A stretch of 64,000 bases of DNA from Monocercomonoides exilis PA203 (taxonomy: Eukaryota > Protista > Preaxostyla): the NCBI GenBank assembly GCA_001643675.2, contig LSRY02000012.1, forward strand, positions 744,001-808,000, written 5' to 3'. Below, in pieces: positions 7,401 to 47,384 of the stretch. The notes below the pieces were generated by a model, which was given only the letters and a program-made list of their open reading frames with translations, did not search any database and was not told the DNA's origin. Position numbers and translations under genes: made by a program. Each line of letters starts with the position of its first letter. The stretch's first letter is position 1.

Positions 7401-10400
7401 GATGAGATGCTGTTCTTCCAAAGAAATTTGACGCAGGCGTCATTAGCAGCGAGGAAGAAGAAGCAGACCGAGATCTGTCCATCGTTGCTCCGCTGCGATA
7501 TGTGCACAGCGCGCTGTCTGTTTGACGTCGCGAACTGAGCGTCCCGTCGCAGCATTTCGTGATGGCCTCCTGAAAGGCCTCCTGAATTCGCCTTTTCTGA
7601 CAGCGGGCGCAGTCACAAGTGGCTGCTCGGTGCGGATGATAATGGCGGTGCAGCTGATGCTTGCGATGTCTGCAGCAGGAATCGTCAAAGTCTTCTGCAG
7701 TTGCATTGCTTTCAACCTCTGCATCATCTCGTTCTTTTCCTGTTTGTCTGTTGTTTTTTGCATCATCAGCTGAGCTTATGCTGTGAGAATAGAACGAACA
7801 AGAGCACGATGACCACGAACTGCCGCTGGCAGATTGCGACCAATCGTCTTCGTCGTCATCAGATGCGGATGTGCTGCAAGCTGATGAAGATTCGGTGTCT
7901 GAACCTGCAGGTGAAAAGCAAGAAGATGCATAGCTACGATCTGTTGCAGATGAGAAACGGTAAAGAGAATTTGGGGTGTGTGAGAACGTGGAAGAAGAAG
8001 GGAAAGCTTTGGAAAGCGGGATTGATGCAGACGAGCTGCAAGAGGAGAGCGTTGTGGAAGAAAGAGGAGCCTGAAACGAGCGATATGACTGGCGCTCAGA
8101 TATCTGGGCAGTCTCAGGCGCTGAATGATCAGAGCGAGGAAGAGAATTATACGAACGCAGCTTCGGAAATTGTCCAGCTGGAGAAGAAGTTCCATTTGGA
8201 AAGGAAGAAAAGGAAGTGTCGTACGAGCTTATTTCAGAAGCTGTTTCAGATTTCTTTGCTAAAGCAGAGGCTGATCCGGAGGGTGTGCATTTGCCTGTTG
8301 AATCAAATTTTGAGAGAGCGAAAGAAGAAGACGGCTCGCTCTGCGACTTCCACTCGCCCAACGAGGAAGATAACGTCGATTGCGATGTGGCTGGTTCAAA
8401 TCCAGTTGGATTGCACTTATCAGCCTTGTTGATCTTGTCAGATACTTGAGATCCTTTCAAAAACGAAGAATTTATCTGAAATGATGACACATTGCTGGGC
8501 TTTGAGAAAAGAGACTTCTGCGAAGATTTCTGTATGGAATTGATTTTCGTTTCTTTTGAACCACTTTTGCGGATAATCATTTCGTCAGAGTCGAATTTTT
8601 CATCTGTTTTCTTTTCATTTTCATTATCCATCTCACTTTTTGTGGGATTCTCTGCTTCTTCCTTTTCTTCTTCTTCTTCTTCTTCTGAAGCAATCTTTTG
8701 CATCATTCTTCGTTCTGCCTCTTCGACTTCCTCGCCAAGACTCGACCGCACATCAAAGTCCAAATGCTCTTCGTATTGCCTTCTGTCTTCTGGATCGTAG
8801 TCATCTCCATCATCATCATCATCATCATCGTTCTTTGAATGTGCAGATCGGGATGAATGAATGACAGGTGAATCTGCCCCCATGCCTTTGTCTTTGCCTT
8901 TGCCCTCACCTTTCGCTGAAGGACCGCTTTGTTTTCCGTCTTCCCATTCATTCACAGGCAGAAGAGGCGGAAGATCATCTTTGCTGTCTTCAGGCACTGC
9001 CTTCCCAATAATTGCGCTGACTTCATCGGAAATATCGCGAAAAGAGTTTGCGTTTTCATTGAATGAATCTTTTAATTGAAGTGATTCGTCATTATTTTCA
9101 TCAAAATGCTCATCATCTTCATCGTTTGTTTCAGAAGAATCAAAAGATCGTGTTTCAAAATCGCAACTTTTTGAAGAGTCTCTTAACTTTGAAATTTTTT
9201 CGGCTGCTTCTTTCTTCATTCGTTTTGCCTTTTCGTCTGCTTCAATCCAAAACTGTTTAATTGCTTCCAAATCATTCGATTTCATTTGTAATTTGGAGTT
9301 GCTCATTTCTTTTGATTCATCTTCTTCCTCATTTCTTTCCATCTGATTTGAATAATCATCACATAATTCTTCTTCTTCTTCTTCTTCTTCTTCTTCTTTT
9401 GCATTGGAAACAAAAGTCGATTCACTTCCTTTTCCAATTGTTTTTGTCGATAAATTCTCATTTAATGAACCCGATCCATCATTTTGGAGAGCATGCGATA
9501 AAGTGTGTCTTAATTGCGAATCGCGAGCAGGAGCAGAATTATGTGGCGTGGCTAGCATCGAAGGCGATGAGGAAGGCCGCACAGTTCGACTTTCCTTTGT
9601 GCTTATTTTTCTGTTCTTTTCTTCAGCTTCATACTCCGCAAGCTCCTGAGAAGGCGAGCTTTCCTTAGAAGAATGTGTTGAGCAGGTCGAAGGATGCGGA
9701 GTGACTGGCCGGCGAGGAGAAGGAGCAAAGAAGGGAAGGGCTGATAGCTGAAGCCTGGGCACCGCCACAGGAGGCATTTGGCGTGCTTTGACGTGAGGCG
9801 ATTGTTGCTGAAGTGAAGACGATGAATGTTCAGAGCAGCAGCTCCTGTCGCATTCAGAATTGTGCGAAACGTTGCTGAGTCCTTCGTCATCACCACTCAC
9901 AGCGTCCTCCTTCTCGTCCGGACGACTGCTCCGATATGTGTCGCTTCCCAAGTATTCGTTGTCCATTCTGCTTCGCTCTCCTTCAACAGAAAGAGGAGAT
10001 CGCTCGATGATGCGAGGCGTCTCTGATCGAACAATGGTCGCATTCTTTTGCATTGAAGAGATAGACGCAGCTGCCTCTGTTCTTTCATTCTCTGCTCCAT
10101 TTTCAATTTCTGTTTCTCTTATTTCACACTTTAGTTCTCTTTGGTTTCTTTTTTCGCAGACTGACGAGCTGTGTGCTTCTTCCACACTGTTTATATCTTT
10201 TTGAGCAAATGCCAAATCTGCAGGATTCGCAAACGAAGAGAATGATACTGTGGATTCGGCAAGTGACGCCAAGTCTTCTTGTTTCGTTTCATCGTTCTCA
10301 TCGGAGTTCTGAATAGATTGTTCATCCAATCCATCTTTCTCAATTTCTTCTTTGATCAATTTTGAATGCTTGACAGCTGTTTCATCACCCTTGAATGCAA

Positions 10401-11244
10401 CATTCATCAACGGATCAAAATGCAAACCCATTTCTTCTTTCATTTCAGGATGAAGCTCTATAGAATCCCTTATGGATTCTCTGAGTGATTTTGAAAACAA
10501 TCCAATCATTTGTGATTCAACAGCCCCATCAGCAGAAAAAGACCTACGCTCCCTTGACGCAGTTTGAATATCGGCACTCCATAAATGATTATCAACTGTT
10601 GGGCAATTGATACTATTATTCAATTTACTGCTCTTTTTTTGATATTGCTCTTGGGAATTTAAGCTTGCGCTGTGAGTTCGTTGAGAAGTTGAAAAATTAT
10701 CCGTATAATCTGATAAGCGATAACCTAACAAATTAAAGTTTCTCACTTTTGTGCAGTCATCGTGGGTTTTATCCTTTTTGCTTTCGTGTATAGAGGAAAA
10801 TACTTCATTTTCATTTGACGAATGTTCACTGCAGATAGAATGGGATGAACGTTGAGCTGTTGAAGATGGTGAAGCTGATACAGGTCTTCTTTTAATATCA
10901 GAACAATACAAATGTGAGATTAGTATTCTTGGAAGTATTTTCATAATTCCTCCTTGTTCTTTATATCTTTTAACGGCTTCAGAGTATAGTGGAGCAAGTT
11001 TTCGACCAAATGGGGCATTAAAAGATGGAGGCTTAGGAATTGGTTGCAATAAACTACTTGTAATCGATTCCAAAAATGGTGCTCCTTTTGAATGAGGTGA
11101 CCGAGAAAAATTTTGAGTTCTGGGAATAGAACTTTCACGTGGGGCTTCTGTGTCAATTGTAGTCATAGAAGAATATCTTGATCCAACTAGGAATGACCTC
11201 ATTTCTTTAGAAAGTAAAGCTTCTGCGTCAGGCCTAACTATCAT
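1456..11244 (-). CDS. Giant Ser/Glu/Pro-rich low-complexity hypothetical protein (3262 aa); 5' exon(s) may extend upstream
   Basis: 9.8-kb uninterrupted ORF with higher GC than its flanks. No recognisable domain. The annotated start is close to a possible splice acceptor. Confidence 0.85.
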   Translation of the reverse strand: MIVRPDAEALLSKEMRSFLVGSRYSSMTTIDTEAPRESSIPRTQNFSRSPHSKGAPFLESITSSLLQPIPKPPSFNAPFGRKLAPLYSEAVKRYKEQGGIMKILPRILISHLYCSDIKRRPVSASPSSTAQRSSHSICSEHSSNENEVFSSIHESKKDKTHDDCTKVRNFNLLGYRLSDYTDNFSTSQRTHSASLNSQEQYQKKSSKLNNSINCPTVDNHLWSADIQTASRERRSFSADGAVESQMIGLFSKSLRESIRDSIELHPEMKEEMGLHFDPLMNVAFKGDETAVKHSKLIKEEIEKDGLDEQSIQNSDENDETKQEDLASLAESTVSFSSFANPADLAFAQKDINSVEEAHSSSVCEKRNQRELKCEIRETEIENGAENERTEAAASISSMQKNATIVRSETPRIIERSPLSVEGERSRMDNEYLGSDTYRSSRPDEKEDAVSGDDEGLSNVSHNSECDRSCCSEHSSSSLQQQSPHVKARQMPPVAVPRLQLSALPFFAPSPRRPVTPHPSTCSTHSSKESSPSQELAEYEAEEKNRKISTKESRTVRPSSSPSMLATPHNSAPARDSQLRHTLSHALQNDGSGSLNENLSTKTIGKGSESTFVSNAKEEEEEEEEEELCDDYSNQMERNEEEDESKEMSNSKLQMKSNDLEAIKQFWIEADEKAKRMKKEAAEKISKLRDSSKSCDFETRSFDSSETNDEDDEHFDENNDESLQLKDSFNENANSFRDISDEVSAIIGKAVPEDSKDDLPPLLPVNEWEDGKQSGPSAKGEGKGKDKGMGADSPVIHSSRSAHSKNDDDDDDDGDDYDPEDRRQYEEHLDFDVRSSLGEEVEEAERRMMQKIASEEEEEEEKEEAENPTKSEMDNENEKKTDEKFDSDEMIIRKSGSKETKINSIQKSSQKSLFSKPSNVSSFQINSSFLKGSQVSDKINKADKCNPTGFEPATSQSTLSSSLGEWKSQSEPSSSFALSKFDSTGKCTPSGSASALAKKSETASEISSYDTSFSSFPNGTSSPAGQFPKLRSYNSLPRSDHSAPETAQISERQSYRSFQAPLSSTTLSSCSSSASIPLSKAFPSSSTFSHTPNSLYRFSSATDRSYASSCFSPAGSDTESSSACSTSASDDDEDDWSQSASGSSWSSCSCSFYSHSISSADDAKNNRQTGKERDDAEVESNATAEDFDDSCCRHRKHQLHRHYHPHRAATCDCARCQKRRIQEAFQEAITKCCDGTLSSRRQTDSALCTYRSGATMDRSRSASSSSLLMTPASNFFGRTASHPYFSPPPSITSFADTADSSSMAGGFSSATSPSKESIGGTYFSSNASEASFYTSNNSSNVVSGATSLSLQSTGGESKSNSNTQSSEDVTARYTSRHRCHIHHKPSKFFSDESRANLYQEQKHGQTDRKRRNSSFDNEGKRAHKHKRKDGKGRSRQNSVLSLAGYDASLGQLAYVSDLNGKDIQNAFNDKGEKDPKANENDLKVKNGKTAEAILLRRKQQKQPKSPKLSANAILSSLLEGKGEASALTLRQNQLSRTGNAMFQPGSKRIAKMSSIKEKEGEEGEEGVNEEESAEISVFDPMLFQPVNIAQIPMEPSMSSIPFSSKGTRWNVKPSQSKLTRHKKIKGNDEQQLHQQQSNLLSPNVLPHPCSFGAFPPEPTFKALPKQRNIPISSKAISERSTSNTPQKQLLKDDNGRFSLFDTKRSKTALPSQRRRIKPFGANEPKSQFGLHRLLYPSTLLSQTSQPTPTQPRIVATSSIPSASASSSPVITSTSTQAINGLSPHLSPILSAINTPTNNKKLQKSRDSNSDPFETSLSIQSKSLKSPVLTALSSTAPPSSSVSLFSIPGKASNDAANSLKEQDADDIFLNLRSLSFAPSAQPNISSSQNHSHLLSVPSNPPPSLIPPPSHLLVSPSRALDVLGASAYKLKHSHSHSRQHHLKDKQAPSDSDENGFAFRTHPLTPPPLTPTTPIRSRFNSATAQIIDQETAAPLTTEVSSTEAPISPTIDKSIKKDTISEETAKESKSSDEINKDMSDMLCTTLDSHTLEAINSKLTESCVTVSVDDSLTELSITCGSNNLSAMQISAPKLKTVSSSQLQQKQNSQTNLGKDEEKGDGMNSSQKQDRLEDTKLTAKDTSKSSLENIGAKEKRHRFISYHRVHPPSLDFTNPENVTSQQHLPMESSRTISEYFMDSPSITSSSSNSSLLQKPHMTRDFSSGISLDRTTTSSTLLSTYSTFGSQMDLDSMDFSTERSLCSTTYSSSFDDDKEFLMTPSHSSPKQSKSKLADQSSSAKIQLFSKNEASPEPQQMQNTGISSLSPQNPFISTPAERIQRVPLLPVLVQQGMIKTETELRKERREKLREEAEKRKFQRNTSPDHGKHESNRFAKEGNQMQYPYSERQKSPSREIATNTSKMASQEISCVANYSQSILSANEQLEMDQPTLEDFSNVELEAIDEKICDNTAIDMDEKEIQRDFAVSPMNSFQQKNTSLPSLQEQEFTQEKKEEIVFSHNNSVDGVGSTENSDIFQSHVNIYRDQNESDEDRVELESVGEDGRSIGKAKMKNRFVDCTGYSDEHIYRDYEEKDDFIDSISKTSESGKNNVNEKIDEEKSKFCQIEYHAEQKEHPFNDELASGNPGNFSTSTSAQFKDEENPFSSPKIDISSFLESSLPHSSATVNSPKTYNTHPTSPSSIHSTSSDIDTEPIQPANDWSDNRSNLSPSSFNYSTPIQNSRSSTSVPFHKPKPASLISPTGNSLKKSSFAFDTSAHSFSSNITFPSNNFLSSPKSPLSPLPPLPSLSIIRGTSPMQDIRTTQPKIISSLKEGSNSLTSSSSFSEVSSFNTVFSDSSQKQNSAKDEFFSVSPFLLPPKQDSHSTQSPSSKALTSSPSGNETLDFDEPNNENPHQTKRAVSANSISSWNIPPSTPFNSEVLAAPFFGSEELFSSMPPLPPPSSPASSSPPSRFHTPPLSQNEISLAPSSDLLADSLHSKMEQTGSDFLIAENSVPEKSSVLIPQKESDLQFSNNNVEQASDDSRKIGGDGSVSCSKSKVGNREFSKQRKKDMPKPKWVATKRIGQLNPHVNIQTSSPTKPKSSAISQKMPFVGSCSPQRFYRTKQQTSISSSPTPLVSKNSSDITSTPINLSNTHHSLISASIKSASSQSKTYTPTPESISSLHNTTFHSLPQQNFSFTGKNSDAHSFKVHMPSDVREKQSIIDKRSETNTLSLIQKVVNHSPSKRHSHVQLRDIQPLQIIGDSIVHASSFSKRK

Positions 11245-14377: not shown

Positions 14378-15221
14378 ATATTTTAAAAGACAATCTTTTG
14401 AGCTACTATTACTTTTCAATATCGATTAATCTGCATTTTAAGAAAAGACTCAGACCGAAAATTTTGATAGAAAAAATATGAATTCAAAAATAATAACCCA
14501 TATCGAAAACAAAAATTTGAAACATCCAGAATATGTTGAAGAAATTTTTTCAAATGACTGTTGTTAATCCCCATCTGTTGCTTGAAAGTACAAAAAGCAT
14601 TCATATATATACATACAAATACAAATTCACACACACATGCAAATCTCATTTTCTTTTGTTTCAATCATTCATTCTGGTTAATACTCCACAAGAACCACTT
14701 GGCATGAAAAGTTTTCTCTGCTCTCATGTCATCGTCCTTCAAAACACACTGAAATACTCAGACACTGCACTCTCACCTTTAGGCTCTGCCTCAACACAAA
14801 TTGCATCAGTCATCGTCATCAATGCTGCGCCTTCCGGAAACCCCTAAAAAATCACACGTTTCATACCAATGCGGCGAGATATAATCTAATTGACAGACGA
14901 GTTGAGCAAAAATGCAAATAGCTTTTGAAAAGCACTCTTTTTCTAATTATTTTAAAATTATTGTTATTTGGCGAAACTTCGTCTGTCATGTTCAGTTTTA
15001 AAAATGTTAAAAATAAAAAAAAATGGGTGAGATAATCAATTTTATATTTATAATTCCGTATCTCTTTATATAGCTTACAAAAATTAATGAACTCTGCTGT
15101 CTGTATGTTAATTTTTGTTGTTTATTTGTTTTTATCAATCTTTATTAAAAATATTTTATTTTTAGTGGGTTAATTTCTATCATTATTAAAGCACTTTCAT
15201 TATCACCATGCACCGATTAAT

Positions 15222-15900
15222 ATGGAAAGTGAAATGTTGAATATGCTTAAATATTTGTCAAATAGATATTTGAGGTGTGCTGTAATTTTTTCTGTTTGTT
15301 ATTTTGATTTTTTTTATTGAAGAAACAATATTTCGTATGACGATTTCGGAGCAGAAGAGAATTGAATCAAATTAATGAAAAAATGAATTTAATGATTGAT
15401 GCAATTTGCCGAAACAAATTCATTGTTATTTGCGATCAAAGCTGAGTTAACAGAAACAGCGTTGTGATTGAAATGATTAAATCTTCTGTTGAACGTTTTC
15501 TGTTTATATTGAAATAGGCTTGAAAATGGAAAGAGATGAAAAATGAATGCACACATTCAATTTGCAATTCGTTGTTGAAAAAAGTTTCGAGCATAAATTC
15601 GTTGATAAGAAAGATAGATGCTAAGAATTAATAACTGACAAACGACATTCGCATTTTCTTTGAATACATAAACTAATTCATCATTTCAGCCAAATTGCTA
15701 GAAATTTGATTTTTCAAATAGCTGCTTTAAACATTGCAGAAATCGAAGTTGTACTGATAATTAATCCGAAACAAAAGCAACAGATGACATAGCAATATCA
15801 TCATTTTTTTTGTTTGTTTCTCCAATGAGATAATTTCAGTGAATGCTTTTATTTTACAAATATATTTTCAAACGAGATGGTACAACTGAGAAATCAAATA
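15222..15900 (+). pseudogene. Decayed fragment of the FSELEHC helical gene family (left cargo)
   Basis: Interrupted frames (INEKMNLMIDAICRNKF...; AEIEVVLII) align loosely with the N-terminal half of the 34305-35626 protein. Boundaries are approximate. Confidence 0.45.
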
Positions 15901-15959: not shown

Positions 15960-17225
15960 TGGAACTCATTTAATTGTTAATAAAGCGATTCTGAAATTTT
16001 ACATCTAAAAATGATTTTTTTCCGATGAAACATTCAAAAACAAAAAGTGATTTAGAATTTGTTCTTGATCAATGGATTTCAAAAACATGTCATCAAAGGA
16101 ATTAATGAAATCTCCAGCATTCAATAAGTCTCAATCTCTATCGTCTCTGCTTCTCGTTGCAGTTTTTATGAAATAAAAACATGCACTGATTATATCTCTG
16201 TTGCTGTCCTTTTTTGCTTGAATAGTCTGAACATCGTTTCCAACTTGTCCATTATTCTTATTATTCTACAATCAAGCGAAGAAAATTCGAAAAGCTTTTA
16301 TTTGGATCCATCAAATGATCGTTTTTGCTTCATTCCATTTTCCTTTTCTCTTCAAATCAACTTTTTTAGATCATTTTCTCTTTCTGAATCTTGAACAATA
16401 TGCATCACATTCACAATGACTTCTTTAAAGCTTTTGTCAGAGTCAAATCTGTAAAATGATAAACGGCAAACAGATTGATATTTCAGTGTTGAAAGATTTC
16501 TATTTTCCTGATGATATTAACTGATTTTTTTGTATTTATTCATGTTTAATTCTTTTGATTCTCTCTTAAAAAACGATTGAGAAAAAATATTTGAAATATC
16601 AAAAACGAATGGAAATGCTTGCACTTGTTATATAATGATGTGACTCAATTCGAATAAAACTACCTGCACTTCCTTTAAAACTTCATCGGTTATCTCTTTG
16701 TTAAGCATCTTTTTGAAAACAAAGCACATAAATGCAAAAGACTTCCTCTGCTGAATCGTCATCACACAGTCAATGATATTTTTTTTATAAAGATCAATCG
16801 AAGTTTTTCATCCATTCCTTTTTCGATTTTCATTTTCTTTAATAATCATATCCTGTATCCTTTTGTTCAATGAAGATTTTCCAAAGCTGTCGATTCACAA
16901 ACTTTTCAATGCTTTGCAATATCAAATGTCCTTCTGCAAAGCAGCAGCTTTCTTCAATGATATTTTCTTTTTGTCGAGCATTCTGAAATTTTCTTTGAAA
17001 AGTTACAACCTTTGAAGCGGTGTTGAGTTCATTTCTAATCATTATTAGAATACTTTCCATCAAACTTATTAACATTACATAAAGCTCAAAAAACACAAAG
17101 CCCAACAAATTATAAATAATGTGTATTCTATCATAAATATCCAAATAACAAACAGAAAAAATTACAGCACACCTCAAATATCTATTTGACAAATATTTAA
17201 GCATATTCAACATTTCACTTTCCAT
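15960..17225 (-). pseudogene. Decayed copy of the FSELEHC helical gene family (right cargo)
   Basis: YHQENRNLSTLKYQSVCRLSFYRFDSDKSFKEVIVNVMH aligns with YHQKHRNMSRLAYQLSWNFLINRFYADRSMESVVMNELH in the 34305 ORF. KEITDEVLKEVQVVL aligns with KEESEETQKEAEISL. Many stops. Confidence 0.75.
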
Positions 17226-18272
17226 ATTAATCGGTGCAGGGTGATAATGAAAGTGCTTTAATAATGATAGAAATTAACCCACTAAAAATAAAATATTTTT
17301 AATAAAGATTGATAAAAACAAATAAACAACAAAAATTAACATACAGACAGCAGAGTTCATTAATTTTTGTAAGCTATATAAAGAGATACGGAATTATAAA
17401 TATAAAATTGATTATCTCACCCATTTTTTTTTATTTTTAACATTTTTAAAACTGAACATGACAGACGAAGTTTCGCCAAATAACAATAATTTTAAAATAA
17501 TTAGAAAAAGAGTGCTTTTCAAAAGCTATTTGCATTTTTGCTCAACTCGTCTGTCAATTAGATTATATCTCGCCTTTTTTGGCAATCGCATCATATCTTT
17601 GATATGCAGCAAATAACTTTCGCTTTATTAGAAGGCTTCAACAGATGGCAAGCCATTTTGCAGCATTAACCATGAAAAGTTGACAGCGAACGTATCCTGA
17701 AAAAGCAGTGAACTTTTTATAAAACTGTAAATTACTCAATATCATATGAAACGATTCTGAATAAAACATGAAAATCAAGCATTCTGCATTCGAAAAATCT
17801 TCTAACATTTTCATTAGGATTCACATATATGAGATTAAGAAAAAAAACTCAAATGATTTTCCTGGAATTTTATCGAAAATAAATGATGTTTGATAAATAG
17901 ATTCCAATGTCAAATCACGCACAAATAATCATTTTGAGAATATTACAAGCAATGGAATTGTTTTTGATTTTCATGGTTATTTTCGAGAGACTCCCAATAT
18001 TTGTTACGCTTTTTCTGAGTTAATGATTGTAAAAACTTTTCCACTTTACGGCAAAGTATTTTTCGGTTCATCGCATTCAAGTGATGAGATGCAAGACATA
18101 ATGTTTGTGATTTTATTTTTTTGTCAATACGAAAATTTATTTTCATCGCGATTGATAGATTTGTTCAGAGTAGTGAAAATTCATCTCAATCAGGACAAAC
18201 TGAAATTAATGCGAAAGAAAACTGTTTAATAATTGAATCAAATGAATAGGTCCGCATTCTTCAGAAGAATCG

Positions 18273-18790
18273 ATGATTTTTTCTCCAATAAAACGGAAAA
18301 ATGCTGCGATTCATCAAGATCATGATTCTCTAACTGAAAGAAGGGTGAATTCAATAGACAGCGAAAAAACGTGTTCTTCTCCATTTTTCAAATCTTCTCC
18401 AACATCTTCGCAGGTTTTGAATTTTGAAAGAAATTCTCAAATCCCAGATTTTCAAATCATATCATCGAAATCAAGAAAGAGACAGAAAAAGAGTAACCAA
18501 CCTGATTTTGAATCGTCATGAAAGAAAAAAGATACACAAATTTCCAGTTAAGAAGAGCAAACTTTATGTTCAGATGAAAGTGAAGATGAAGAAGAACATT
18601 ACGGCTTATTGTTTGATGGATTTCTAAAAGAAAAAGAGGATGAACATCTTCGAATTTCAAAAGAAACAGTTATCGAATTGATAAATTTGTTTTCATCTCA
18701 CATAAGCAAAGTTCCGAAAAGAGGGCAAAAGAAAATTCTTTCCATTCACGATCAATTGGTTGTTTTCTTAGAATGGTTATCAAGCAAAAC
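18273..18790 (+). pseudogene. Harbinger/ISL2EU-type (DDE_Tnp_4) transposase, 5' part, interrupted by the Merlin element
   Basis: LRISKETVIELI...LSIHDQLVVFLEWLSSK is an HTH_Tnp_4-like motif. The frame resumes at 28717 once the insertion and one TSD copy are removed. Confidence 0.8.
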
Positions 18791-19482
18791 GGCATAGGTG
18801 TATTTAAGGTCCTTTTCCAATTCTTGATTATTCTTTTAAACATTATGATAAATAAAAAGTAGAATTAATAATAAAACATTTGTATGGACTGGAATTTTGA
18901 AATTCTTTTTGATCCTTGAGAAAAAACTAATTTTTAAAATGACCCATAAATATGAGTATTTTTTTCAAAATTTTAATAAAAATTGATAATTTTGAAACAA
19001 AAAATAGATGAAATGTTATTAATTGTAATATTGTTCAATTTAAATAATAAAAATTTGATTAATAAAACAAAACAAAACAAATAAATAAATAAAAATATTT
19101 TGTTCAATCTTTCCATTATATTTTAAATATCCAGAAAATAAGAAATTTGTTTCTTTCGTCAAGAATTGAACCCCAGCTTGTAAATCTGAGACAAATCAAA
19201 TGTTTAGAAATATTATTAAAGTGTGCAATTAAAGATTATAAAAATTTCATTCTATCCTTAATGAATTTTGTTTATGATTTTTAAGCTGATCAATTTTGTG
19301 CAGTTTGAGGATATTAATGTTATGCCGTGATGATCTTGAATTAAGAAACGCTGGTGAGGCCAACAAAGTTTGAATTTCATATGAATTAACTTATTTGTAG
19401 AATATTTTAACGATTTTCATTATATTTTTATTAATTTTCTTCTGAAATAAGAGAGAATGCAAAATGCAAGAAGATATTTATT
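18791..19482 (+). repeat. Left TIR of the Merlin element (~692 bp)
   Basis: Near-identical reverse complement of 28016-28708 apart from a diverged block at about 19005-19115. Confidence 0.92.
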
Positions 19483-21750
19483 TAAGCAACAACAACTGCA
19501 CAAGAAAAGGAGAAGAAGTATATTTGGTAGCAAAAAAGAGGAGATTCGAATCTAGATTTGTGGGAATGAAGTTCAATGCAAACGCAACAAAATGGGAAAC
19601 TATATTTACATTGAATACATCAACATCACATCCCAGATCAATATGCGCTAAGCATGAAGTCCTTGATCTTATCATGTGGACATCTTCAATGTATGAAATA
19701 CATATTTAATGTTTTATTAACAAAGTATATTGCTCAAATTTCAGAAATAACAACAACCAGTTGAAGTTTCACATTCAAGAGATGCAGTTTGGCAGAGCGT
19801 TCATTTGGTGAATCTTCATGGTGATGGCTTCTTCTGTTTTGTGTGAAAGCAGCAACTTAACAAATATTGTGAACATAGGAAGCGGTGAAGGAGGTGTTGC
19901 AAGTGTGACATTAAGAAATGAAGAAGATTTGATCATTAATTCAACAAATGCATCATCTTGTTCACTTTCATCAGGCAATGGAAAAGGAGGGTTTTTGTAT
20001 TTGGAATGTCAAAATTGTTTGGATGAAAAACCATTTATTTTTGATGTGAGTGTCACTTTTGAGAACAGCAATGCAGTCATAGGAAAGAATGTGTTCATTT
20101 TGGGAAAGGATTTTAATTTTTCTGTTACGACTTTAGCATTCAGATATGATTACTCATCAATGACAGGCGATAACAATTTGTTTGTAGGAAGTGATAGTTA
20201 TCATTCGAATAAAGATTTGTTCATGTTCCTCGTTCCATACAACTCAATGGAGATATTTATTTCATCAGAAGGATTTGATGTTGCAAGATGTGGAAGTGAA
20301 GAAGAGCCGTGCTTCACAACGTGGAAAGGGATGAAAAACATGAAAAAGGAGGAGAATGCAACGATTAGTGTTAGGGTTGTGATGATTGTTGACTGTCAGA
20401 TTGGAGGTGAAGAAAGCAAGGAAGGAAGTGGATCTTTGGTGGTTGATATGTGGATGGTGAGCGTGAAATTCATGGAGATTCAGAAGGAGAGCGTATTTGT
20501 GAGAGGGACTGAGTTTTATGAAGGAGTGATTCTGAGGGAGGAGAAGGGGTAGTTGTTGGGGAGAAGTGGATAAAGATGGAAATGAGTGGGATCACGATAA
20601 AACGATGTAAGATAAGAATGGGGAGCGGGGTTGTTGCAAAACGAGGAAAGAGATTCAGAGTGTGATACGATCAAATGTTCTCACTGTGCGGATCTATAGA
20701 AGTGGATGGAGGGTCATTGAAGTGTGAGGTTGCAGAAGGAGGGGTGGTTGTTGTTGAGAGCAGCACATTTGAAGGATGCTCGGCAAAGGAAAATGAAGAG
20801 AAAGGAGGAGAGATATTCATAAATGCTGTTGGAGAGAGCTGCTAATATTGCTTTGTGGTGAAGGGGTGTGTGTTTGAGAGAAACAGGGCAGGGGAAGGGA
20901 CATATATGTTTGTGGCATGAGAGGATTTGAATGCAACAATCCTTCCGAAACGGTTTGAGATAAAGCTTGTGGGCGAAGATAGGGTGAGCAAAGTGGAGCT
21001 GTGAGGGAGGGATAATGGAAGATTTGCAAGGGAGAGTGTTGACTTGCTTCTGTTTCTGGTGAAGTCCAGCGGAGATGAGGTGCATGTGTCGGAAGGGAGC
21101 GGGATGGATGTTCTGGGGTGCGGGAAAGAGGAGATTGCATGTGGCACGCTTTGGTGTGGGATTGGACATCTGAAGGAAGAGAGTGGGCAAGAAGAGCAGA
21201 AGGTTGTGGTGAGCGACAGATGTGTGGTGAGTGACTGCTTTGTGTTTGAGCGAGGAACAATGATATGTGGGCCTGAGGCAGAAGAAGCAAAACAGGCGAA
21301 GATGAGTGTTGAATGGGAGCTGAAGAGCAATGGATGTGAAGCTGTGATGTGGAGTGGTGAGCACCTGAGTGTGGGGATGTTTGTGATAAGTCTTCCGCAG
21401 GTGTTTGGAAGTGGGCAAAGCATGGTTCTGGGAACAGAAGGTGGGGTGGTGAATGTGTTGAATGTGGGGTTTGAGTGGAGAGAGAGTGGGGTTGTTGCAT
21501 ACAGGATTGTGAGCACGCTGAATGGGATGCTGAATGTACAGAACTGCTCAGTCAGGGGAGCATCGTTTGAGAAGGTGCCATTTGCTGTGCATTCGAGTGT
21601 GGTTGTGGAGAGCTTTGAGGGGGATAGAGTTTGAGTTAAGTGAAGAGGAGAAGGTTGTGCTGAGAAGCACAAGAGAAAGAGGATGTAGTTGTTTTGAGAC
21701 ACAAAAAAGGAGGGTTTGTGAGTATGTGTGGAGGTTAGAGAGATAAAACA
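19464..21750 (+). pseudogene. Cargo pseudogene: beta-helix-like surface protein fragments, paralog of 24416-27919
   Basis: GKGGFLYL...GKNVFI...FISSEGFDVARCGSEEEPC and HVSEGSGMDVLGCGKEEIAC repeat motifs are shared with the 1167-aa protein. Broken by stops and frameshifts. Confidence 0.75.
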
Positions 21751-22290
21751 GTTTCAGGAAAGGAACATCAAAGAACGATGTTTGAAGAAGAACTGATTTG
21801 AGTTCGTATTTGTGAAAAAAATAGTGGATGAAAGTTGTGTTATAATAATCTGGGTTGTTTGATGAAGGGTGTGGAGTAAGAGAGTGATGTGGACACGGGT
21901 GAAAAGAAACTGGAAAAGAAAAAAGGAGAGGAAAGTTTGTGAAGTGAGAAGATGAGGCGAAACTTAATTTAATTAATGGTGAGATGATGGTTGTTTTGGG
22001 AAGAACTTGATTTCCAGTTTGTTTTCTGAAACAACAACAATCATGTTGTTTGAGAATGAGAAAATTGTGGTTGAGTGATTGTATTCAATCTGATTGTTAT
22101 TGCAATATGGATATTCAAATAGAATAATTGAATTTCAGTTCAATAAATGCAATTCCAACAATTAGCAAAGAATCTTTTCACATGTTTTGACAAATTTGAT
22201 GATAAACAAAAAAAGATAATTTGTAATTTAATTGCATTGTTTGAACATCGTTTAAAAGTGATGTGAAATAAAGTGTTGTGATAAATTTAT

Positions 22291-23856
22291 CTACAAACTA
22301 ATAGGATATTGCTCGGTTCCAATATTTGTTGATTTGATGAAACTTCTAAGAATTTTTCGATTTTGAATTGTATTTGTTTTTTCTTTTTCTTTTTTCTCCA
22401 TCTCCTCAATTGTTGTTTCCTTTTTTTCACAAAACAGTTTTGATTCAAGAATTAAAGTTTCAATCTGTTGATTCTCTGTAATTTTCACGAATCTACCATT
22501 TTTTGATCTGTTTCTAATATTTCTTTTTTTTCTAACAGTCTTTGTTTCAAAATCTGAGATGGTTTCTTCTTCTTCTTCTTTTTCTTCTTCTCCTTCCTCC
22601 ACTTCTTCCACTTCTTTCTTTTCTTTCTCTTCTTCCACTTCTTTCTCTTCTTTCTCTTCTTTCTCTTCTTTCTCTTCTTTCTCTTCTTTCTCTTCTTTCT
22701 CGTCTTCATCATCAATTTTTCTTCTTTTTAAAAATTCAGTTTTATTTGTTTCAATCAATTTCTTCGTTAACCTTTTTTTCTTAAGAACTTCATCCAGCTC
22801 AGTTTCATCGACCATTTCATAATCTCTTCTTTTTTTCATTTCCTCTTTTTTCAAATAATAAGATGATAATTTGAATTTTCTTTCTTTATTCAAAACACTT
22901 AACATATTTTCAGCACTATCGTTGTAAGCACGAAGAAAAACATCCAAATTTTTCTTATCAATCTTTGATAATTCTTTCATGAATGCAGTTGGAGAAAGTC
23001 GATTGTTGTATCTGTATTGAAACTCGTAAACATATTCCTTTGTCTTTAAATATGTTCTCCCTCGTTTTGGAATATGATTTTTCAAATGAGACCAGATGCT
23101 TTCAATAGTCTGCGTGTAAACTTTTGGATTTTCTGGTTTTACAAAATTAAGAGTGTGATTTACGCTGTCTATAGTGAAGCCATTTTCACTTACGCAATTA
23201 TACGCTGACCACTTATCAGACATTATTGTTGATGATCTTTCAATGTTTTTTTTTACGAAGTAGAAAATTGTATCTGCTTTTCTATCAGGAAGAAATTCAA
23301 CAATCAATCTTTGAGGTTTTCCTTTTTCCTTTCTTTCGATGACACCCCATAACCACTGCTGTTCTGTGCACCTCCCCACTCCGTTTTTTCTTTTGTGTAT
23401 TAAAGTTTCATCAATTTCAACAATACGATTATTACCAACTTTTTCCATTTTGCTCGTTTCAAAAAAGCAACATATTCTTCTCATCTTTTCATTAAATTTC
23501 ACAACAGTTTTGTTTGCAACATTCAGCTCGAAAGTGACTTCCTTTATTGAATGCTTGTACCAAAAATGATATAAAAGAGATACAATTTTCATTGGTGATA
23601 AGTGAAATTCCATGAATATAGAATTATAACTCCAACTAAAAATTTTTCCACATTTTGAACATTTGTAGGCATAGAAATCGTTTTCCTTTTTGTGTTGTTT
23701 CAGCTCCATCATTCTGTCGCATTTCCAACATTTCCTATTTTTTCTGATTAATCCGTATTTTGATAGCAATTCAACTGCAAGATGATTTTTATTGTTTGAT
23801 CGAATTAAAAACTCACTGAAAGTTGGTTCTTCTTCGAATATTTCGTTCTCGCTCAT
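22291..23856 (-). CDS. Merlin/ISXO2-like (DDE_Tnp_IS1595) transposase, 521 aa
   Basis: Zn ribbon CWKC..CSKC, HTH-like segment, VEIDET, TIMSDKWSAY, VNH, YTQTIESIWSHLK and YVYEFQYRYN. Intact ORF with an acidic/basic tail. Confidence 0.95.
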   Translation of the reverse strand: MSENEIFEEEPTFSEFLIRSNNKNHLAVELLSKYGLIRKNRKCWKCDRMMELKQHKKENDFYAYKCSKCGKIFSWSYNSIFMEFHLSPMKIVSLLYHFWYKHSIKEVTFELNVANKTVVKFNEKMRRICCFFETSKMEKVGNNRIVEIDETLIHKRKNGVGRCTEQQWLWGVIERKEKGKPQRLIVEFLPDRKADTIFYFVKKNIERSSTIMSDKWSAYNCVSENGFTIDSVNHTLNFVKPENPKVYTQTIESIWSHLKNHIPKRGRTYLKTKEYVYEFQYRYNNRLSPTAFMKELSKIDKKNLDVFLRAYNDSAENMLSVLNKERKFKLSSYYLKKEEMKKRRDYEMVDETELDEVLKKKRLTKKLIETNKTEFLKRRKIDDEDEKEEKEEKEEKEEKEEKEEKEVEEEKEKKEVEEVEEGEEEKEEEEETISDFETKTVRKKRNIRNRSKNGRFVKITENQQIETLILESKLFCEKKETTIEEMEKKEKEKTNTIQNRKILRSFIKSTNIGTEQYPISL

Positions 23857-24415
23857 GTTTTTGAAAAAATTGTTCTGTAAATGATCAAAAATTCAAATAT
23901 TAAGATAATTATAATGGAAAATTTTCAAAAAAAGATGTCCATTTGGAATTTGAATTTTTTATTAATCTTTGCATAAAATATTAATATTTTTATTTAAAAA
24001 TTTGCATAATTTTTTTCATGGCCTCAATACAAAAAAACGAAAAAAAAATAATCAAAAACCAACATGATCACAGCGTTGTCTTCACTCATGAAAACAATGA
24101 GAACATTATTTCAAAAGATTAATCCTGTGTGATTATTGTGTTCTTTTATTTAAAAGTTTGAATTTGTTTTCCATTTTGTTAAATTTCAATTGTTTATTCA
24201 CACATGCATTCTCAATTATTTTCAAATATACTTATATACATTTGAATTATGTTTTTCATAGCTTTATTTTATCGTTCTGGTCTTTTTCCACAAGTATGGA
24301 AAGGAAAGAACATTTTCTTATATCCCTTTTTCAATCAGCGCTCCACACATGTGAAAATGCTCAAGTCATGCATTCTCTCTTTAAGACTCTGTCTCAACCA
24401 TTTTTGAATGAATCA

Positions 24416-27400
24416 TCATCCAAAAAAACTGTGTCCAATGGAATGCGCTTGAACAATACACAATTCACATCCATCATCATATCCCTTTCTTCCACATTCT
24501 GTGTGTGCTCTCCACAACTTTCTTAACTCCACAACCGCACTCTCTCCATTCTTTATCTTCTCTCCCACAGTCTCTGCCTCATATTCCCCAAACGGAACAT
24601 TCAGAGTCAAGCACTCCCAGAGCATCATCCCTATTGAAAACGCAACTGTTTTCTTTGTGGCATGCTTCTTGATCCCATTCAGCAGCTCTGGTGCCTTCCA
24701 CCGCAAACATTCATATCGATTGTCTTCATCATCCTCAAACGCAGATGAAGGTGGCGGCGAGTCTCTTCCTCTCCTGCTCATCAATGAAATGTCAGAGGAA
24801 GAGGTGATAATGGTTGATGAAGAGATTGATGAAGAATCAGAGTCATCGGATGAAGAAGAGCAATCTGAGTGCATTGCAACTGTGATAATCATCTGCTCTG
24901 AGAACAGCACAATGTGTGGACTCAGATTAGCCAATGATTGAAGTGGATTTTCCATCTCATCAAACGAGTGGAGTGCTCCATGCACCACCCAGAACAGCAG
25001 ATGGGCCCCTGTCACTTCCCGCTCCACCAGTGTCCCAATCGCCATCTCTTTTTTCTCATTTCTTCCATGCAAAAGCATGAACAGTGAATCCCTCAGATCC
25101 ACAATCAGTTTCTCATGAGGCGATGAGCAGGCCATTGCATCCACCAGATTCGACATTGATGATGTGGTTGGGCACAGATCCTCACCACGAACAAATGTTG
25201 ATTCTGCGTCTGAAGTGTCTGTGGTTGAGGTGGATGAAATGGATGGTGATGGTGTTCTCTTCCTCGATATATCATCTTCTTCCTCCTCGTCTTTCCACAA
25301 TGCCCAATCAGGAATCTTATCTGAATCGCGTCCAAGGATATTTCCAGTGGAGCCACTCTCACTCAGCAAATGTTCAGATGATTCTGAATGGCCCAAGTTT
25401 TTATCATTCACTCTTTTCTTTATTCTTTCTTCATTTTTCTTCTCTGCCTCTCTTTCTGCTCTTCTCCATTGTTCCTCTGGAGACATCACCATCGTCACCA
25501 TCTCAAAGGCCTTCGGATCCTTCTTCACTGATTCATTCACAATCTCTTCCAGTTCTTCTGTTCTTCTCTTTTGCTTTCTCCGTCGAACAACAAACATAAT
25601 AAATCCAATCAGAACAATAAACAATGTCACAACTTGCACTATAACAACCAACAGCCATATCGATTTCCCTTCTTTTCCTCCTTCAACAATCCTTTCATTC
25701 TTATTTGTTTTTGTTTCATTTGCATTCTTCAGAATGAATGAATTTGTTGACGAAGGAGATTCTGCATTCCCAAACAAAACATGCACGCTCACCTCTATTT
25801 CATTTCCACAATTGCTGATGAGATCTTTTCCCACACTTCCCTCAACTTCTCTTTCCGATAAAAACCCATATGTATCAAAATCATAATTTTTAACCTCTTT
25901 CTTTTCTCCTTTTCTCTTTACAACTCTGAATGACAGATTGCATGGAACAAAAAGCAATCCTTTGAATGTCAGCTTCATTCGATCTGTCTCTTCTTTTGCT
26001 TCCACACTCTCCAACACAGGAATAAAGAATGGAGATGTCCTCTCAGAAATAATCCCTTCAAAACTGCACCCATCATTCAACATCCAAAGTGAAGTGTTTC
26101 TCTCCAATCCATCTCCTCCTTTCAAACTCATCACATTCAATGTTCCTGAATCTGAACATATGATATTTCTTCTCATCGATGGATATCCTTCAATTGATGG
26201 ATTGTTATTCATAAACTCTCCTTTCTCAATTATCACATTTCCCCCACTCATCGTAATACCACCTTCTAGTGAATTCGATAATGTTGTGTCTTTCATCATC
26301 ACAGAGCTATTCACAATATCAACAAGAGATCCATCCCACCTGCATATCTCTTCTTCTTCATTGAAAGTCTGTTCATTTCTTTCCTTTGAATTCCCATCAA
26401 AAATGCAACTGTCCATTTTCACATCTGTGCAATTCTCCAATTTCATCAATTTTCCTTTTGTAGTCTTTGAACTGACTCCACCTATTGTGCAATTTGCTAA
26501 CTGAATTGTCTTTTTCATTGACAGGCAAGATATTAATGATTCTTCATTTCCTTCAACTGTGATATTTTCTGAATGAAACTTTTTCATATTTAATTGCCCA
26601 CATTCATTAATATCCATCAGAGATTTTGAAACTGTTGAATTACAAATCGTTAATGAATCCATCACTGATGGAAGTGAAGATAAAAGATATAATGCAGATT
26701 TTTGAAGAATGAGATTTGACATTGTGCATTCCATAAGCTGCAATTCTCCTTCTGCCGTATTAATGATGTAAAATGGAATGTTTGCTAATTTTATACTTCC
26801 TTCTCCAGCCGATTGTTTTGAGTCAAATGAGCAATTTATAATCTCAAGAATTCCTCCTTCGGGTGACGTCAATGATTCATGTACAGAAGCGAAATTCGAA
26901 TCAAACACAAATTTCACTCTCACCAATGAGACTGTTCCGATTGTTGTTATTAATGCCTCTCTTGTTTTTTCAATCCCTGATTTCACTTCAACTTTGCATT
27001 TATCTCTGTTCTTTAAGCTCAAATTCATTTCCTTCAGATTTATTTCTCCTTCAATCACACCCACTTCAACAATGAACATTTGACTGATGAAATCTGAAGT
27101 CAGATGCGCAATTCCATGTTCAATCGAATAACAAGGAAATTCATCGCTCCCACATCCCAATGTGTCGTGTCCATCCTTTGAAACAGACACCTCCACCCAT
27201 TTCAGTTTTGAAAGAAACACTCGAAGATCCATTTCTTCATAAATCCCTTCTTTCCCAACAAATGCATTCCCATCATCCTTGTATTCCGTGCAATCAAATG
27301 CAAAACGCTCTGTCTTCACACTGTTCACCAGATTCCCACTCTTCACAAACATGTTCTTCCCAACTGTTGCTGAGCATCCAGAAAATGATATTGATGAGAG

Positions 27401-28060
27401 ATGAAATCCTCCTTCATTTGAACTGCAATCCAGGTATATCCCTCCTCCTTTTCCTCCCTCACTCATATTCTCGCAAATACATCCAATAAATGAACTATTT
27501 TCAAGTGTCATAAATCCTCCTTCACTCAACGCTATTTTCATTGCTCCTCCTTTTTTGCTCTTCTTCGATAATGCCCCTTCTATCTTGCTTCCATTCATCA
27601 TCATTTCAACTCCCACATTCCCTTCAAATACGGCTGCCTTTCCCTCTACTGCCACTCCACTGTCAATCTCCAATCCTTCCAGTGTGCAATTCAACAGTTT
27701 CACCTTGTATTCCTGTTCATTCATATTTGCTGAGGAAAGTGAAAATGAAAACAACGAGACAGATGATTTCGCATCTGAAATCGTGACAGAGTCCAGCTCA
27801 ACCATCTTTCCCATTGATTTGATCAAGAAAAATCCAATTGTGTTTTGCTTCCCTTCAATCACACTCATTGCGCAGTTCGACATGTGCAACTCTCCATTTC
27901 GAGTGCTCGATTCAATCACTGCTGAAATTGTCCTTTTAAAACTCGATGGAACAACAATCCCAAAGAAATTTATTTCTGTCAGCGATTCTGTTTTCAGAAT
28001 GCATTCTTCAGTTCCAATAAATATTTTCTTGCATTTTGCATTCTCTCTTATTTCAGAAGA
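24416..28060 (-). CDS. Cargo gene: 5'-truncated receptor-like protein (beta-helix-like ectodomain, single TM, pseudokinase C-lobe)
   Basis: GGKGGGIY and CGSDEFPC ectodomain motifs, TM IWLLVVIVQVVTLFIVLIGFIMFVV followed by RRRKQKRR, and kinase-like CLRWKAPELL / FSIGMMLWECLT..PF. The frame is open from about 28063 inside the TIR with no ATG before 27886. Confidence 0.8.
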   Translation of the reverse strand, partial: SSEIRENAKCKKIFIGTEECILKTESLTEINFFGIVVPSSFKRTISAVIESSTRNGELHMSNCAMSVIEGKQNTIGFFLIKSMGKMVELDSVTISDAKSSVSLFSFSLSSANMNEQEYKVKLLNCTLEGLEIDSGVAVEGKAAVFEGNVGVEMMMNGSKIEGALSKKSKKGGAMKIALSEGGFMTLENSSFIGCICENMSEGGKGGGIYLDCSSNEGGFHLSSISFSGCSATVGKNMFVKSGNLVNSVKTERFAFDCTEYKDDGNAFVGKEGIYEEMDLRVFLSKLKWVEVSVSKDGHDTLGCGSDEFPCYSIEHGIAHLTSDFISQMFIVEVGVIEGEINLKEMNLSLKNRDKCKVEVKSGIEKTREALITTIGTVSLVRVKFVFDSNFASVHESLTSPEGGILEIINCSFDSKQSAGEGSIKLANIPFYIINTAEGELQLMECTMSNLILQKSALYLLSSLPSVMDSLTICNSTVSKSLMDINECGQLNMKKFHSENITVEGNEESLISCLSMKKTIQLANCTIGGVSSKTTKGKLMKLENCTDVKMDSCIFDGNSKERNEQTFNEEEEICRWDGSLVDIVNSSVMMKDTTLSNSLEGGITMSGGNVIIEKGEFMNNNPSIEGYPSMRRNIICSDSGTLNVMSLKGGDGLERNTSLWMLNDGCSFEGIISERTSPFFIPVLESVEAKEETDRMKLTFKGLLFVPCNLSFRVVKRKGEKKEVKNYDFDTYGFLSEREVEGSVGKDLISNCGNEIEVSVHVLFGNAESPSSTNSFILKNANETKTNKNERIVEGGKEGKSIWLLVVIVQVVTLFIVLIGFIMFVVRRRKQKRRTEELEEIVNESVKKDPKAFEMVTMVMSPEEQWRRAEREAEKKNEERIKKRVNDKNLGHSESSEHLLSESGSTGNILGRDSDKIPDWALWKDEEEEDDISRKRTPSPSISSTSTTDTSDAESTFVRGEDLCPTTSSMSNLVDAMACSSPHEKLIVDLRDSLFMLLHGRNEKKEMAIGTLVEREVTGAHLLFWVVHGALHSFDEMENPLQSLANLSPHIVLFSEQMIITVAMHSDCSSSSDDSDSSSISSSTIITSSSDISLMSRRGRDSPPPSSAFEDDEDNRYECLRWKAPELLNGIKKHATKKTVAFSIGMMLWECLTLNVPFGEYEAETVGEKIKNGESAVVELRKLWRAHTECGRKGYDDGCELCIVQAHSIGHSFFG

Positions 28061-28708
28061 AAATTAATAAAAATATAATGAAAATCGTTAAAATATTCTA
28101 CAAATAAGTTAATTCATATGAAATTCAAACTTTGTTGGCCTCACCAGCGTTTCTTAATTCAAGATCATCACGGCATAACATTAATATCCTCAAACTGCAC
28201 AAAATTGATCAGCTTAAAAATCATAAACAAAATTCATTAAGGATAGAATGAAATTTTTATAATCTTTAATTGCACACTTTAATAATATTTCTAAACATTT
28301 GATTTGTCTCAGATTTACAAGCTGGGGTTCAATTCTTGACGAAAGAAACAAATTTCTTATTTTCTGGATATTTAAAATATAATTGTGGGATTGATCAAAA
28401 TATTTTAATTTTTTAATTTATTTTTTTAATGTTTTATTTTTTGAAAAATCATTAATATAATAAGAGTATATAATAATTAATAACGTATCATCTACTTTTT
28501 GTTTCAAAATTATCAATTTTTATTAAAATTTTGAAAAAAATACTCATATTTATGGGTCATTTTAAAAATTAGTTTTTTCTCAAGGATCAAAAAGAATTTC
28601 AAAATTCCAGTCCATACAAATGTTTTATTATTAATTCTACTTTTTATTTATCATAATGTTTAAAAGAATAATCAAGAATTGGAAAAGGACCTTAAATTCA
28701 CCTATGCC
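28016..28708 (-). repeat. Right TIR of the Merlin element (~693 bp)
   Basis: Ends CACCTATGCC and is followed by the TSD AGCAAAAC. Confidence 0.92.
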
Positions 28709-28716
28709 AGCAAAAC

Positions 28717-29850
28717 AACTGTTAAAAACATCGCAGGTTTTCTTGGATTATCGGAAACAATGGCCAGCAACAGCATTCGAGAGATCAGTCCATATTTGCT
28801 TTAAGTGTTGGACGAGATTTTCAAAAATCCGCTCAGAACTCCAAAGTTCATTTCCGAAGAATTTCCGTCTGTTTCCTTGCTTGTTGACGCAACCACTGTC
28901 AGATGTTCTGTTCCAGTTGGAGACTTTGATGATGCAAGGCAATTGTTTGATGGGAAACACAACTCTTACAGCATGAAAATAGAAGTCGCAGTATCAGCCT
29001 GGCCTCCATTCAAAGCGTTGTTTGTTTCGGACTCAGTTCCTGGTGGTGTTCATGACGTTACACTTTTCAAAAATGGCAAGCATTGGCATGTCGAATACCT
29101 TAAAAAACAGAAGAAAAAAAGCTTGGAAATTCAGTGTGCAATCAAAATGATAGTTGGTCAATAATGGCTGATAAGGGGTATCAAGGCCATTTCATTGATA
29201 TCAACGTAATAACTCCCATCAAAAGAATTCATAAAGCAAACAAAATTTTGAATGAAAAATAATTCCAACGTTCAGGATCTGAATCCGTTTATTCTCTCTC
29301 TTCAACACAGCTTTCTTCTTTCTCTTCGACTCAGCCTTCTTCACTCTCTTCTCAACCTTCATTTAAGTCTTTATCTGTTTCTCCATTATTATCTTTTCCA
29401 TCTGCTTCTTCATCTTCATCAATCTCTCCTCCAGCAGGCAATTTTTTCATCGTTCCTGCATCAGTTGCAACTTCTTCAACTCAATCAGAAACGTTATTCA
29501 CAAAAGCCGGGATAAGCGTTATGACTGCAAAGGAAGTGGAAATTTTCAATAAGAAAGTTGCAAAACATTGTACACCTGTAGAATGGTTTTTCAGTCGAAT
29601 GAAAAGATTGTGGTTCCGAATGTCAGAAAAAAACACAGGTCCACGAGAAGATTTTTCTGCTGATGTGAAGATCGCATGCAGGCTCACGAACATTGTGATC
29701 GATAACAACTCTTTAGAAGCTGATGATGGAATTTTTTTTAGAAAAGTTTCAGAATTGTCAAATAAAAAAGAAACGGAAAAAAAATTGATTCAAGAAAAAA
29801 ATGCAAGCGCAAGCATGGAAAGAAAAATAATAAGGAAAGCCTCCAAATAA
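28717..29850 (+). pseudogene. Harbinger/ISL2EU-type DDE transposase, 3' part
   Basis: LLVDAT, FDGKHNSYSMKIEV, SVPGGVHD, MADKGYQG and VEWFFSRMK motifs. In-frame stops and a frameshift near 29110-29160. Confidence 0.85.

Positions 29851-47347: not shown

Positions 47348-47384
<37 letters not shown>

Follow-up and report, generated by a model that had tools for sequence, protein, structure and literature searches.

The window analysed here comprises 64,000 nucleotides of Monocercomonoides exilis PA203 (C6:744001–808000 of an 82.3-Mb, 101-contig assembly, which was also the genome searched; contigs are given as C numbers) and contains, at positions 18791–28708, a 9,918-bp transposon of the Merlin type that carries fragments of host receptor-like genes together with a transposase gene. 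A repeat search of the window detected its inverted arms as two blocks, 18791–19077/28422–28708 (287 nt, 91% identical) and 19071–19482/28016–28427 (412 nt, 97%), which join as one pair of about 692 bp, 95% identical over 693 nt according to BLAST. The outermost letters of both the left terminal inverted repeat (TIR; 692 bp, 18791–19482, + strand) and the right TIR (693 bp, 28016–28708, − strand, the inverted match to the left arm) are GGCATAGGTG, so that both ends start with 5'-GG, as is characteristic of Merlin elements, and a perfect 8-bp target-site duplication, AGCAAAAC, abuts them on the outside (18783–18790 and 28709–28716). These near-identical termini of about 690 bp and the duplication had been proposed in an earlier note on this DNA, which was made from the letters alone. 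Between the arms lie, from left to right, cargo fragment L (19760–20552, + strand) with a host-like ectodomain module at 19760–20351 and an open reading frame (ORF) of 244 aa at 19818–20552, a degenerate G-rich second ectodomain-like module (20708–21601, + strand) that is interrupted by stops and shows 26% identity to residues 124–416 of fragment R, a transposase gene of 521 codons (22291–23856, − strand) and cargo fragment R (24416–28009, − strand). The listed ORF of R spans 24416–27919 (1,167 aa), its frame is open to 28063, and homology to host genes starts at about 28009; the left-hand cargo (19760–21600) is split into several ORFs.

The element interrupts a PIF/Harbinger-type transposase gene, the 5' part of which (helix-turn-helix region, 18552–18782, + strand) ends at the left duplication, and the 3' continuation of which (28717–29850, + strand, with a DDE_Tnp_4 remnant at 29521–29850) starts after the right one. 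Three uninterrupted paralogues of the flanks were found (on C14, C24 and C38; 84–93% identical to the window flanks), in all of which the left flank directly continues into the right flank and the junction 8-mer is present once, as AGCAAAAC in two paralogues and as AGCAAGAT in the third. The C14 paralogue has an open frame coding for a 642-aa DDE_Tnp_4 protein, and when the window flanks were joined computationally the frame read through across the junction, in agreement with this empty site. A nested, independent insertion of the transposase, which the earlier note had named among the findings that would speak against its proposal, is contradicted, as no short inverted repeat starting with GG was found around the transposase. 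Because of the duplication, the empty-site paralogues and the existence of colinear sister copies with duplications of their own (see below), the whole 9,918 bp are one insertion, and the suggestion that the unit moved as one piece is borne out.

The 521-aa ORF matched the Pfam family PF12762 (DDE_Tnp_IS1595; 72.6 bits, cut-off 27) and the NCBIfam IS1595 transposase model NF033547 (85.4 bits, cut-off 75). It contains a zinc ribbon (CxxC...CxxC, residues 43–69), a D149, D214, E252 triad, an acidic EKE repeat and a conserved C-terminal tail, and the spacing within the triad (65 and 38 residues) falls in the range of Merlin proteins, in which about 50–70 residues separate the first two positions and about 36–38 the last two. 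In an alignment restricted to M. exilis sequences, namely two sister copies and two less closely related Merlin proteins, the triad was conserved in the sequences that span each position, and the zinc-ribbon cysteines were conserved in comparison with the more distant proteins. The transposase is full length and open in four copies (window, C20, C13 and C61), among which the ratio of non-synonymous to synonymous divergence (dN/dS) was 0.07–0.12. Judged by the open frame, the conserved cysteines and triad and the purifying selection, the transposase looks functional, in line with the proposal of an intact enzyme of the IS1595/ISXO2 type and of a possibly autonomous element; the low dN/dS together with the conserved residues is the signature expected of a transposase lineage kept active, and the element may still be active today. 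In a wide homology search two M. exilis proteins were the sole database relatives, and an exact-sequence look-up returned no gene model for the transposase. Public sequencing of the organism comprises four DNA and four RNA runs, and the RNA runs contain 10–14% of the sampled words of 22250–28249, which was not counted as transcript evidence. The EKE tract is encoded by a repeat with a 9-bp period (22547–22726, 14 overlapping copies of a 63-nt unit), and its length differs among the sister copies and the more distant Merlin proteins. A genome search with the transposase gave 1,267 first-look candidates, including many open Merlin ORFs of 300–670 aa at 30–50% identity, suggesting that Merlin diversity in this assembly exceeds the seven published families.

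Comparison of the left arm with the genome gave at least 40 scored matches (140 first-look candidates), and the terminal 22-mer, with up to three mismatches allowed, was found 26 times in forward and 24 times in reverse orientation (50 in all; reversed control, 0 and 0). The terminal repeats, the duplication and this genome-wide count are far beyond chance. Among 21 inverted pairs examined, a lower bound for which the interiors were read for part of the pairs, 16 (the window element and 15 further pairs) were flanked by perfect 8-bp duplications, in keeping with the 8- or 9-bp duplications of Merlin elements and without a common target sequence. The elements fall into three size classes (3.6–3.9 kb, 4.9–5.2 kb and 7.8–10.8 kb). 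The copies of the long class carry the transposase, and those on C91, C35, C20/C76, C16, C13, C61, C8 and C64 are colinear with the window element in the order arm, L, transposase, R, arm. The C20 and C76 copies match at 99.95% identity exactly from end to end of the element and lie between unrelated flanks, which points to recent copying. The shorter relatives (3.6–5.2 kb) have no transposase and retain part of R, namely residues 1–814 (C15 and C2), 205–814 (C80 and C11) or 1–755 (C37); C49 combines residues 468–767 with a transmembrane-plus-tail segment that stems from a different subfamily, and the same tail is present in C37. Since their termini are exactly the same, it is natural to assume that the short relatives were mobilised in trans by this transposase lineage. 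Two of the long copies have a more complicated structure. The C64 element (15.1 kb) consists of the long form plus a 5.2-kb insertion in its cargo (C64:336593–341836) at a position that matches about 27616 of the window, and it has no target-site duplication. The flanks of the C16 copy (1565–9384 of C16:1002200–1012199) extend the inverted repeat to arms of 1,473 nt, which include about 616 nt of flank, and contain a different Merlin transposase (47–49% identical); rather than an ordinary insertion, this copy seems to represent one end and its flank duplicated in inverted orientation.

Arm length varies within the family, from 355–393 bp in the short non-autonomous copies to 692 bp in the window and 847–873 bp in C91, C20 and C35. 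The longest arms were found in C13 (361700–370100), which has two arms of 2,745 bp (96.6% identical) and a perfect 8-bp duplication (AGAAAAAG); the arms here contain receptor residues from about 190 to 1126 in duplicate, to the left and right of an intact transposase. In the short elements, the sequence corresponding to positions of about 355–550 of the window arm is present on one side only, that of R, suggesting that the family shares a TIR core of about 355–393 bp, that the longer arms arose from inner sequence copied to the other arm and that the remainder of the 692 bp in the window is a lineage-specific extension. A composite of two independent elements of about 690 bp was considered and rejected, as the inner ends of the arms lack the terminal motif. 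Merlin elements are typically, though not by strict definition, short, with TIRs of 24–462 bp and the transposase as their sole gene. The window element departs from this anatomy in its length of 9,918 bp, in its arms and in two host-derived ORF regions. The window contains a second long-armed inverted repeat, with arms at 14873–15333 and 17114–17574 (461 nt, 98% complementary) that both begin with GGCGAGATATAATC; the 8-mers outside them differ (ACCAATGC and TTTTTTGG), so that there is no target-site duplication at these boundaries.

The earlier note had described about 6 kb of cargo from a receptor or pseudokinase family; the host origin of both R and L was confirmed, and they proved to be gene fragments, not whole genes. 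R corresponds to the final ~1,100 codons of giant receptor-like host genes with a degenerate kinase tail: among the best 40 matches scored of 4,601 first-look candidates in the genome, residues from ~30–106 up to ~1,130 of R shared 63–74% identity with the last ~1,050 aa of open frames that are 2,000–3,300 aa long, and R had no relative above 74%. The first ~185 residues of the L ORF were 65–78% identical to a module that these giant host ORFs also contain, about 100 codons upstream of the start of R (e.g. C2:594091–594630 and C2:595249–598323). In the transposon the two fragments face inward from opposite ends, and host homology on the right side (84% to C33) begins at about 28009, 7 nt from the inner edge of the TIR, this edge being the end of the arm match. 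All 15 elements examined carried pieces of this single receptor family, the variation being limited to sub-fragments and one alternative tail. The frame of R is open over 1,215 codons in the window and 1,202 in C61; most copies have one to five stops or frameshifts in R, and in C20 and C13 R is broken although the transposase is intact. The start of R in sister copies (C15, C37 and C61) is ATGATG, an internal methionine of the host ectodomain; the window reads ATAAAT at this site, i.e. this start codon has been lost, and its host-like sequence extends about 45 bp farther upstream than in other copies. Without the N-terminal two thirds and the signal peptide of the host protein, the product of R would probably not act as a normal receptor. 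The other large ORFs of the window (1456–11244, 39075–41660 and 45500–49180) showed no match to R.

R is predicted to have a single transmembrane helix (25586–25657, − strand, residues 755–778) followed by a putative kinase C-lobe remnant that was detected by profile comparison (24545–24706, − strand). The Pkinase match to R covered a C-lobe segment only and was below the cut-off (E = 0.0023), and a profile of 15 family members matched TNNI3K and ILK over the C-lobe only (E = 5e-5). PF07714 is present in 78% of the members of the nearest Atlas cluster, and the HRD position reads LAN in R, as judged by eye. An AlphaFold2 model of R built from a 15-sequence alignment had a mean predicted local distance difference test score (pLDDT) of 29, with the transmembrane helix alone confidently placed. 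The 'protein tyrosine kinases' of the tyrosine kinase-like (TKL) group have been described as the largest gene family of M. exilis (Karnkowska 2019, PMC6759080), and unclassified repeats have been reported to overlap the tyrosine-kinase-like family, with no cause stated (PMC8767320); the cargo would fit both this family and this overlap. The proposal that the transposon is a vehicle for amplifying the receptor family did not hold: only about 15–18 (about 10%) of the best 150 matches to L were transposon-borne, and the remainder were intact open frames of 1,200–4,500 aa that had none of the ~50 termini in their vicinity, so that the element is not supported as the main amplifier of the family. 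In the same pairs of receptor genes, synonymous divergence was consistently lower for the ectodomain (0.3–0.7) than for the cytoplasmic tail (0.7–1.5), which suggests region-specific homogenisation.

The cargo of closely related elements is mosaic. The C20 and C35 copies are 96–100% identical over the arms, L, the transposase and the last ~70 and first ~275 codons of R, and they differ inside R, where identity drops to 55–89% in a block that begins and ends abruptly near positions 5950 and 8400 of the element; across such a sharp-edged block, elements that are otherwise nearly identical (96–100%) differ by 20–29%. C91 showed the same pattern in comparison with both C20 and C35, and the pattern was weaker between the window and C64. 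Hypermutation of the cargo was ruled out, as the substitutions within the C20/C35 block are unbiased (287 transitions and 278 transversions), indels are few and the edges are sharp. The trees of the two components are in conflict, C35 and C8 grouping in the cargo tree and C8 and C61 in the transposase tree, each with 100% support, and transposon-borne and chromosomal copies are interspersed in the cargo tree. As the block lies wholly within homologous sequence, the pattern fits homologous replacement, either by gene conversion or by template switching during repair of excision gaps, rather than fresh capture. Between transposon-borne copies the dN/dS of the cargo was 0.32–0.43 for the ectodomain and 0.13–0.20 for the tail, close to the values of chromosomal host–host pairs. 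These values could have been inherited from the chromosomal donors, which we favour since most copies are broken, or could reflect selection on the transposon-borne copies.

We consider it very likely that the locus holds a structurally complete, probably autonomous Merlin cut-and-paste transposon that stably carries two receptor-gene fragments, with mosaic cargo and copied arms. According to this model, the transposase would bind to the long inverted termini in their ~355-bp core (5'-GGCATAGGTGTATTTAAGGTCC...) and integrate the element by an 8-bp staggered cut, the window copy having landed inside the PIF/Harbinger transposase gene. The family stably carries two inward-facing fragments of giant receptor-like genes, putatively of TKL-type pseudokinases, and its shorter relatives, which end in the same termini, no longer have a transposase, retain a part of the receptor fragment and presumably move in trans. 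If homologous recombination, by gene conversion or by template switching in gap repair, repeatedly overwrote this fragment with other versions of the family, this would account for near-identical backbones with cargo about 20% different, and copying of inner sequence from arm to arm would have let the inverted repeats grow from 355 bp up to 2.7 kb. Several points weigh against this interpretation. Neither transposition nor an excision footprint nor a transcript was observed; five of the 21 pairs lack a duplication; and for the swapped blocks of C35 and C20 the assembly contains no donor above 83% nucleotide identity. The window copy also appears not to be young, as its arms are only 95% identical, the start codon of its cargo is lost and L is degraded, and mere decay of a dead fragment does not account for the R frame, which is open over 1,215 codons and has no close relative.

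This open frame, like that of 1,202 codons in C61, would fit receptor-derived ORFs that are accessory genes maintained by selection on behalf of either the element or the host, such as truncated receptors or decoys expressed from the sub-terminal region. The presence of a piece of R in every family member examined, the ATGATG start conserved in C15, C37 and C61, the lack of a close donor for any cargo version and the dN/dS of the transposon-borne copies, near host–host values in both ectodomain and tail, would also agree with such a role. However, R is disrupted by one to five stops or frameshifts in most copies, including C20 and C13 with their intact transposases, its start is an internal ectodomain methionine that provides no signal peptide and is mutated in the window copy, and a low dN/dS can stem from host genes if conversion replaces the cargo; we regard this explanation as improbable. 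A little less improbable, and still unlikely, is a two-way shuttle, in which cargo would be continually exchanged by gene conversion with the chromosomal receptor family of several hundred members and selection would keep the transposon ORFs open. If true, the transposon would sample and redistribute ectodomain and tail blocks, help to diversify the largest gene family of its host and perhaps express truncated receptors sub-terminally.

The star-like cargo tree, with its interspersed transposon-borne and chromosomal copies, and the overlap of unclassified repeats with the kinase family (PMC8767320) could also suggest the reverse direction, namely that the giant host family derives from a gene carried by the transposon. 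We consider this very improbable, as the chromosomal genes are two to three times longer than the transposon versions, which comprise the 3' part and one upstream module in opposite orientation, distinct elements carry distinct sub-fragments, and the genome holds at least 125 intact giant ORFs compared with about 50 termini. Least probable of all, and close to negligible, is that a short Merlin inserted independently into an inverted duplication of receptor genes, the arms being a palindromic segmental duplication. The C16 copy, whose flanks extend the inverted repeat, could be cited for it, but around the transposase there is neither a short TIR pair starting with GG nor a duplication, the duplications of 16 of the 21 pairs lie at the outer ends, these ends are exactly set by the empty-site paralogues, and the transposase always occurs in the same colinear context. 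In M. exilis, an amitochondriate model protist, this Merlin lineage combines a retained transposase with TIRs of 0.36–2.7 kb and with cargo from the organism's largest gene family; such elements would account for part of the overlap between repeats and the tyrosine-kinase-like family noted in PMC8767320. The sharp-edged cargo swaps in otherwise identical elements also make this a clean natural setting in which to study how a transposon and a multigene family exchange sequence, by ectopic conversion or by template switching in gap repair.

That Mutator, CACTA, hAT and Helitron elements capture gene fragments is well established, and a literature search for Merlin and gene capture found no relevant report. 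Pack-MULEs, like Pack-CACTA and Pack-TYPE elements, are reportedly bounded by TIRs and target-site duplications and contain fragments of host genes (transduplication). Pack-type elements are non-autonomous members moved in trans, and capture is thought to occur via gap repair or template switching. The analogy with Pack-MULEs drawn in the earlier note, with the qualification that the transposase is retained, is a fair one: host gene fragments lie between TIRs and the whole is flanked by a duplication. The present family belongs to Merlin and not to Mutator, however, and its full-length member has kept the transposase, so that only the 3.6–5.2-kb relatives, and not the window copy, are non-autonomous like Pack-type elements; moreover, Pack-MULE cargo is captured anew from many diverse, unrelated host genes, whereas here the cargo comes from one receptor family in 15 of 15 elements, is inherited family-wide and was later overwritten. 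Kaonashi-type MULEs are autonomous elements with a ULP1-like protease, in which a transposase and a host-derived ORF have co-transposed long-term. There, a whole captured domain is conserved as an accessory protein, whereas the cargo of the Merlin family consists of truncated, often broken, mosaic pieces. A survey of Merlin elements (Lopes et al. 2021, PMC8101967) described more than 100 copies in seven families (F1–F7) in Monocercomonoides sp. PA203, which have 8-bp duplications and TIRs mostly of 23–29 bp and for which passenger genes were not reported. In the supplementary sequences of that survey (PMC8101967), some of which are incomplete, the terminal 14-mer of the window family was not found. 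Families F1–F7 (PMC8101967) share with the family described here the organism, the DDE_Tnp_IS1595 domain, the GG termini, duplications of 8 bp for which no target consensus is evident and the coexistence of several families with an intact DDE triad. The present family differs from them in its TIR core of about 355–393 bp, in its arms of up to 2.7 kb and in the receptor-gene fragments that every member carries.

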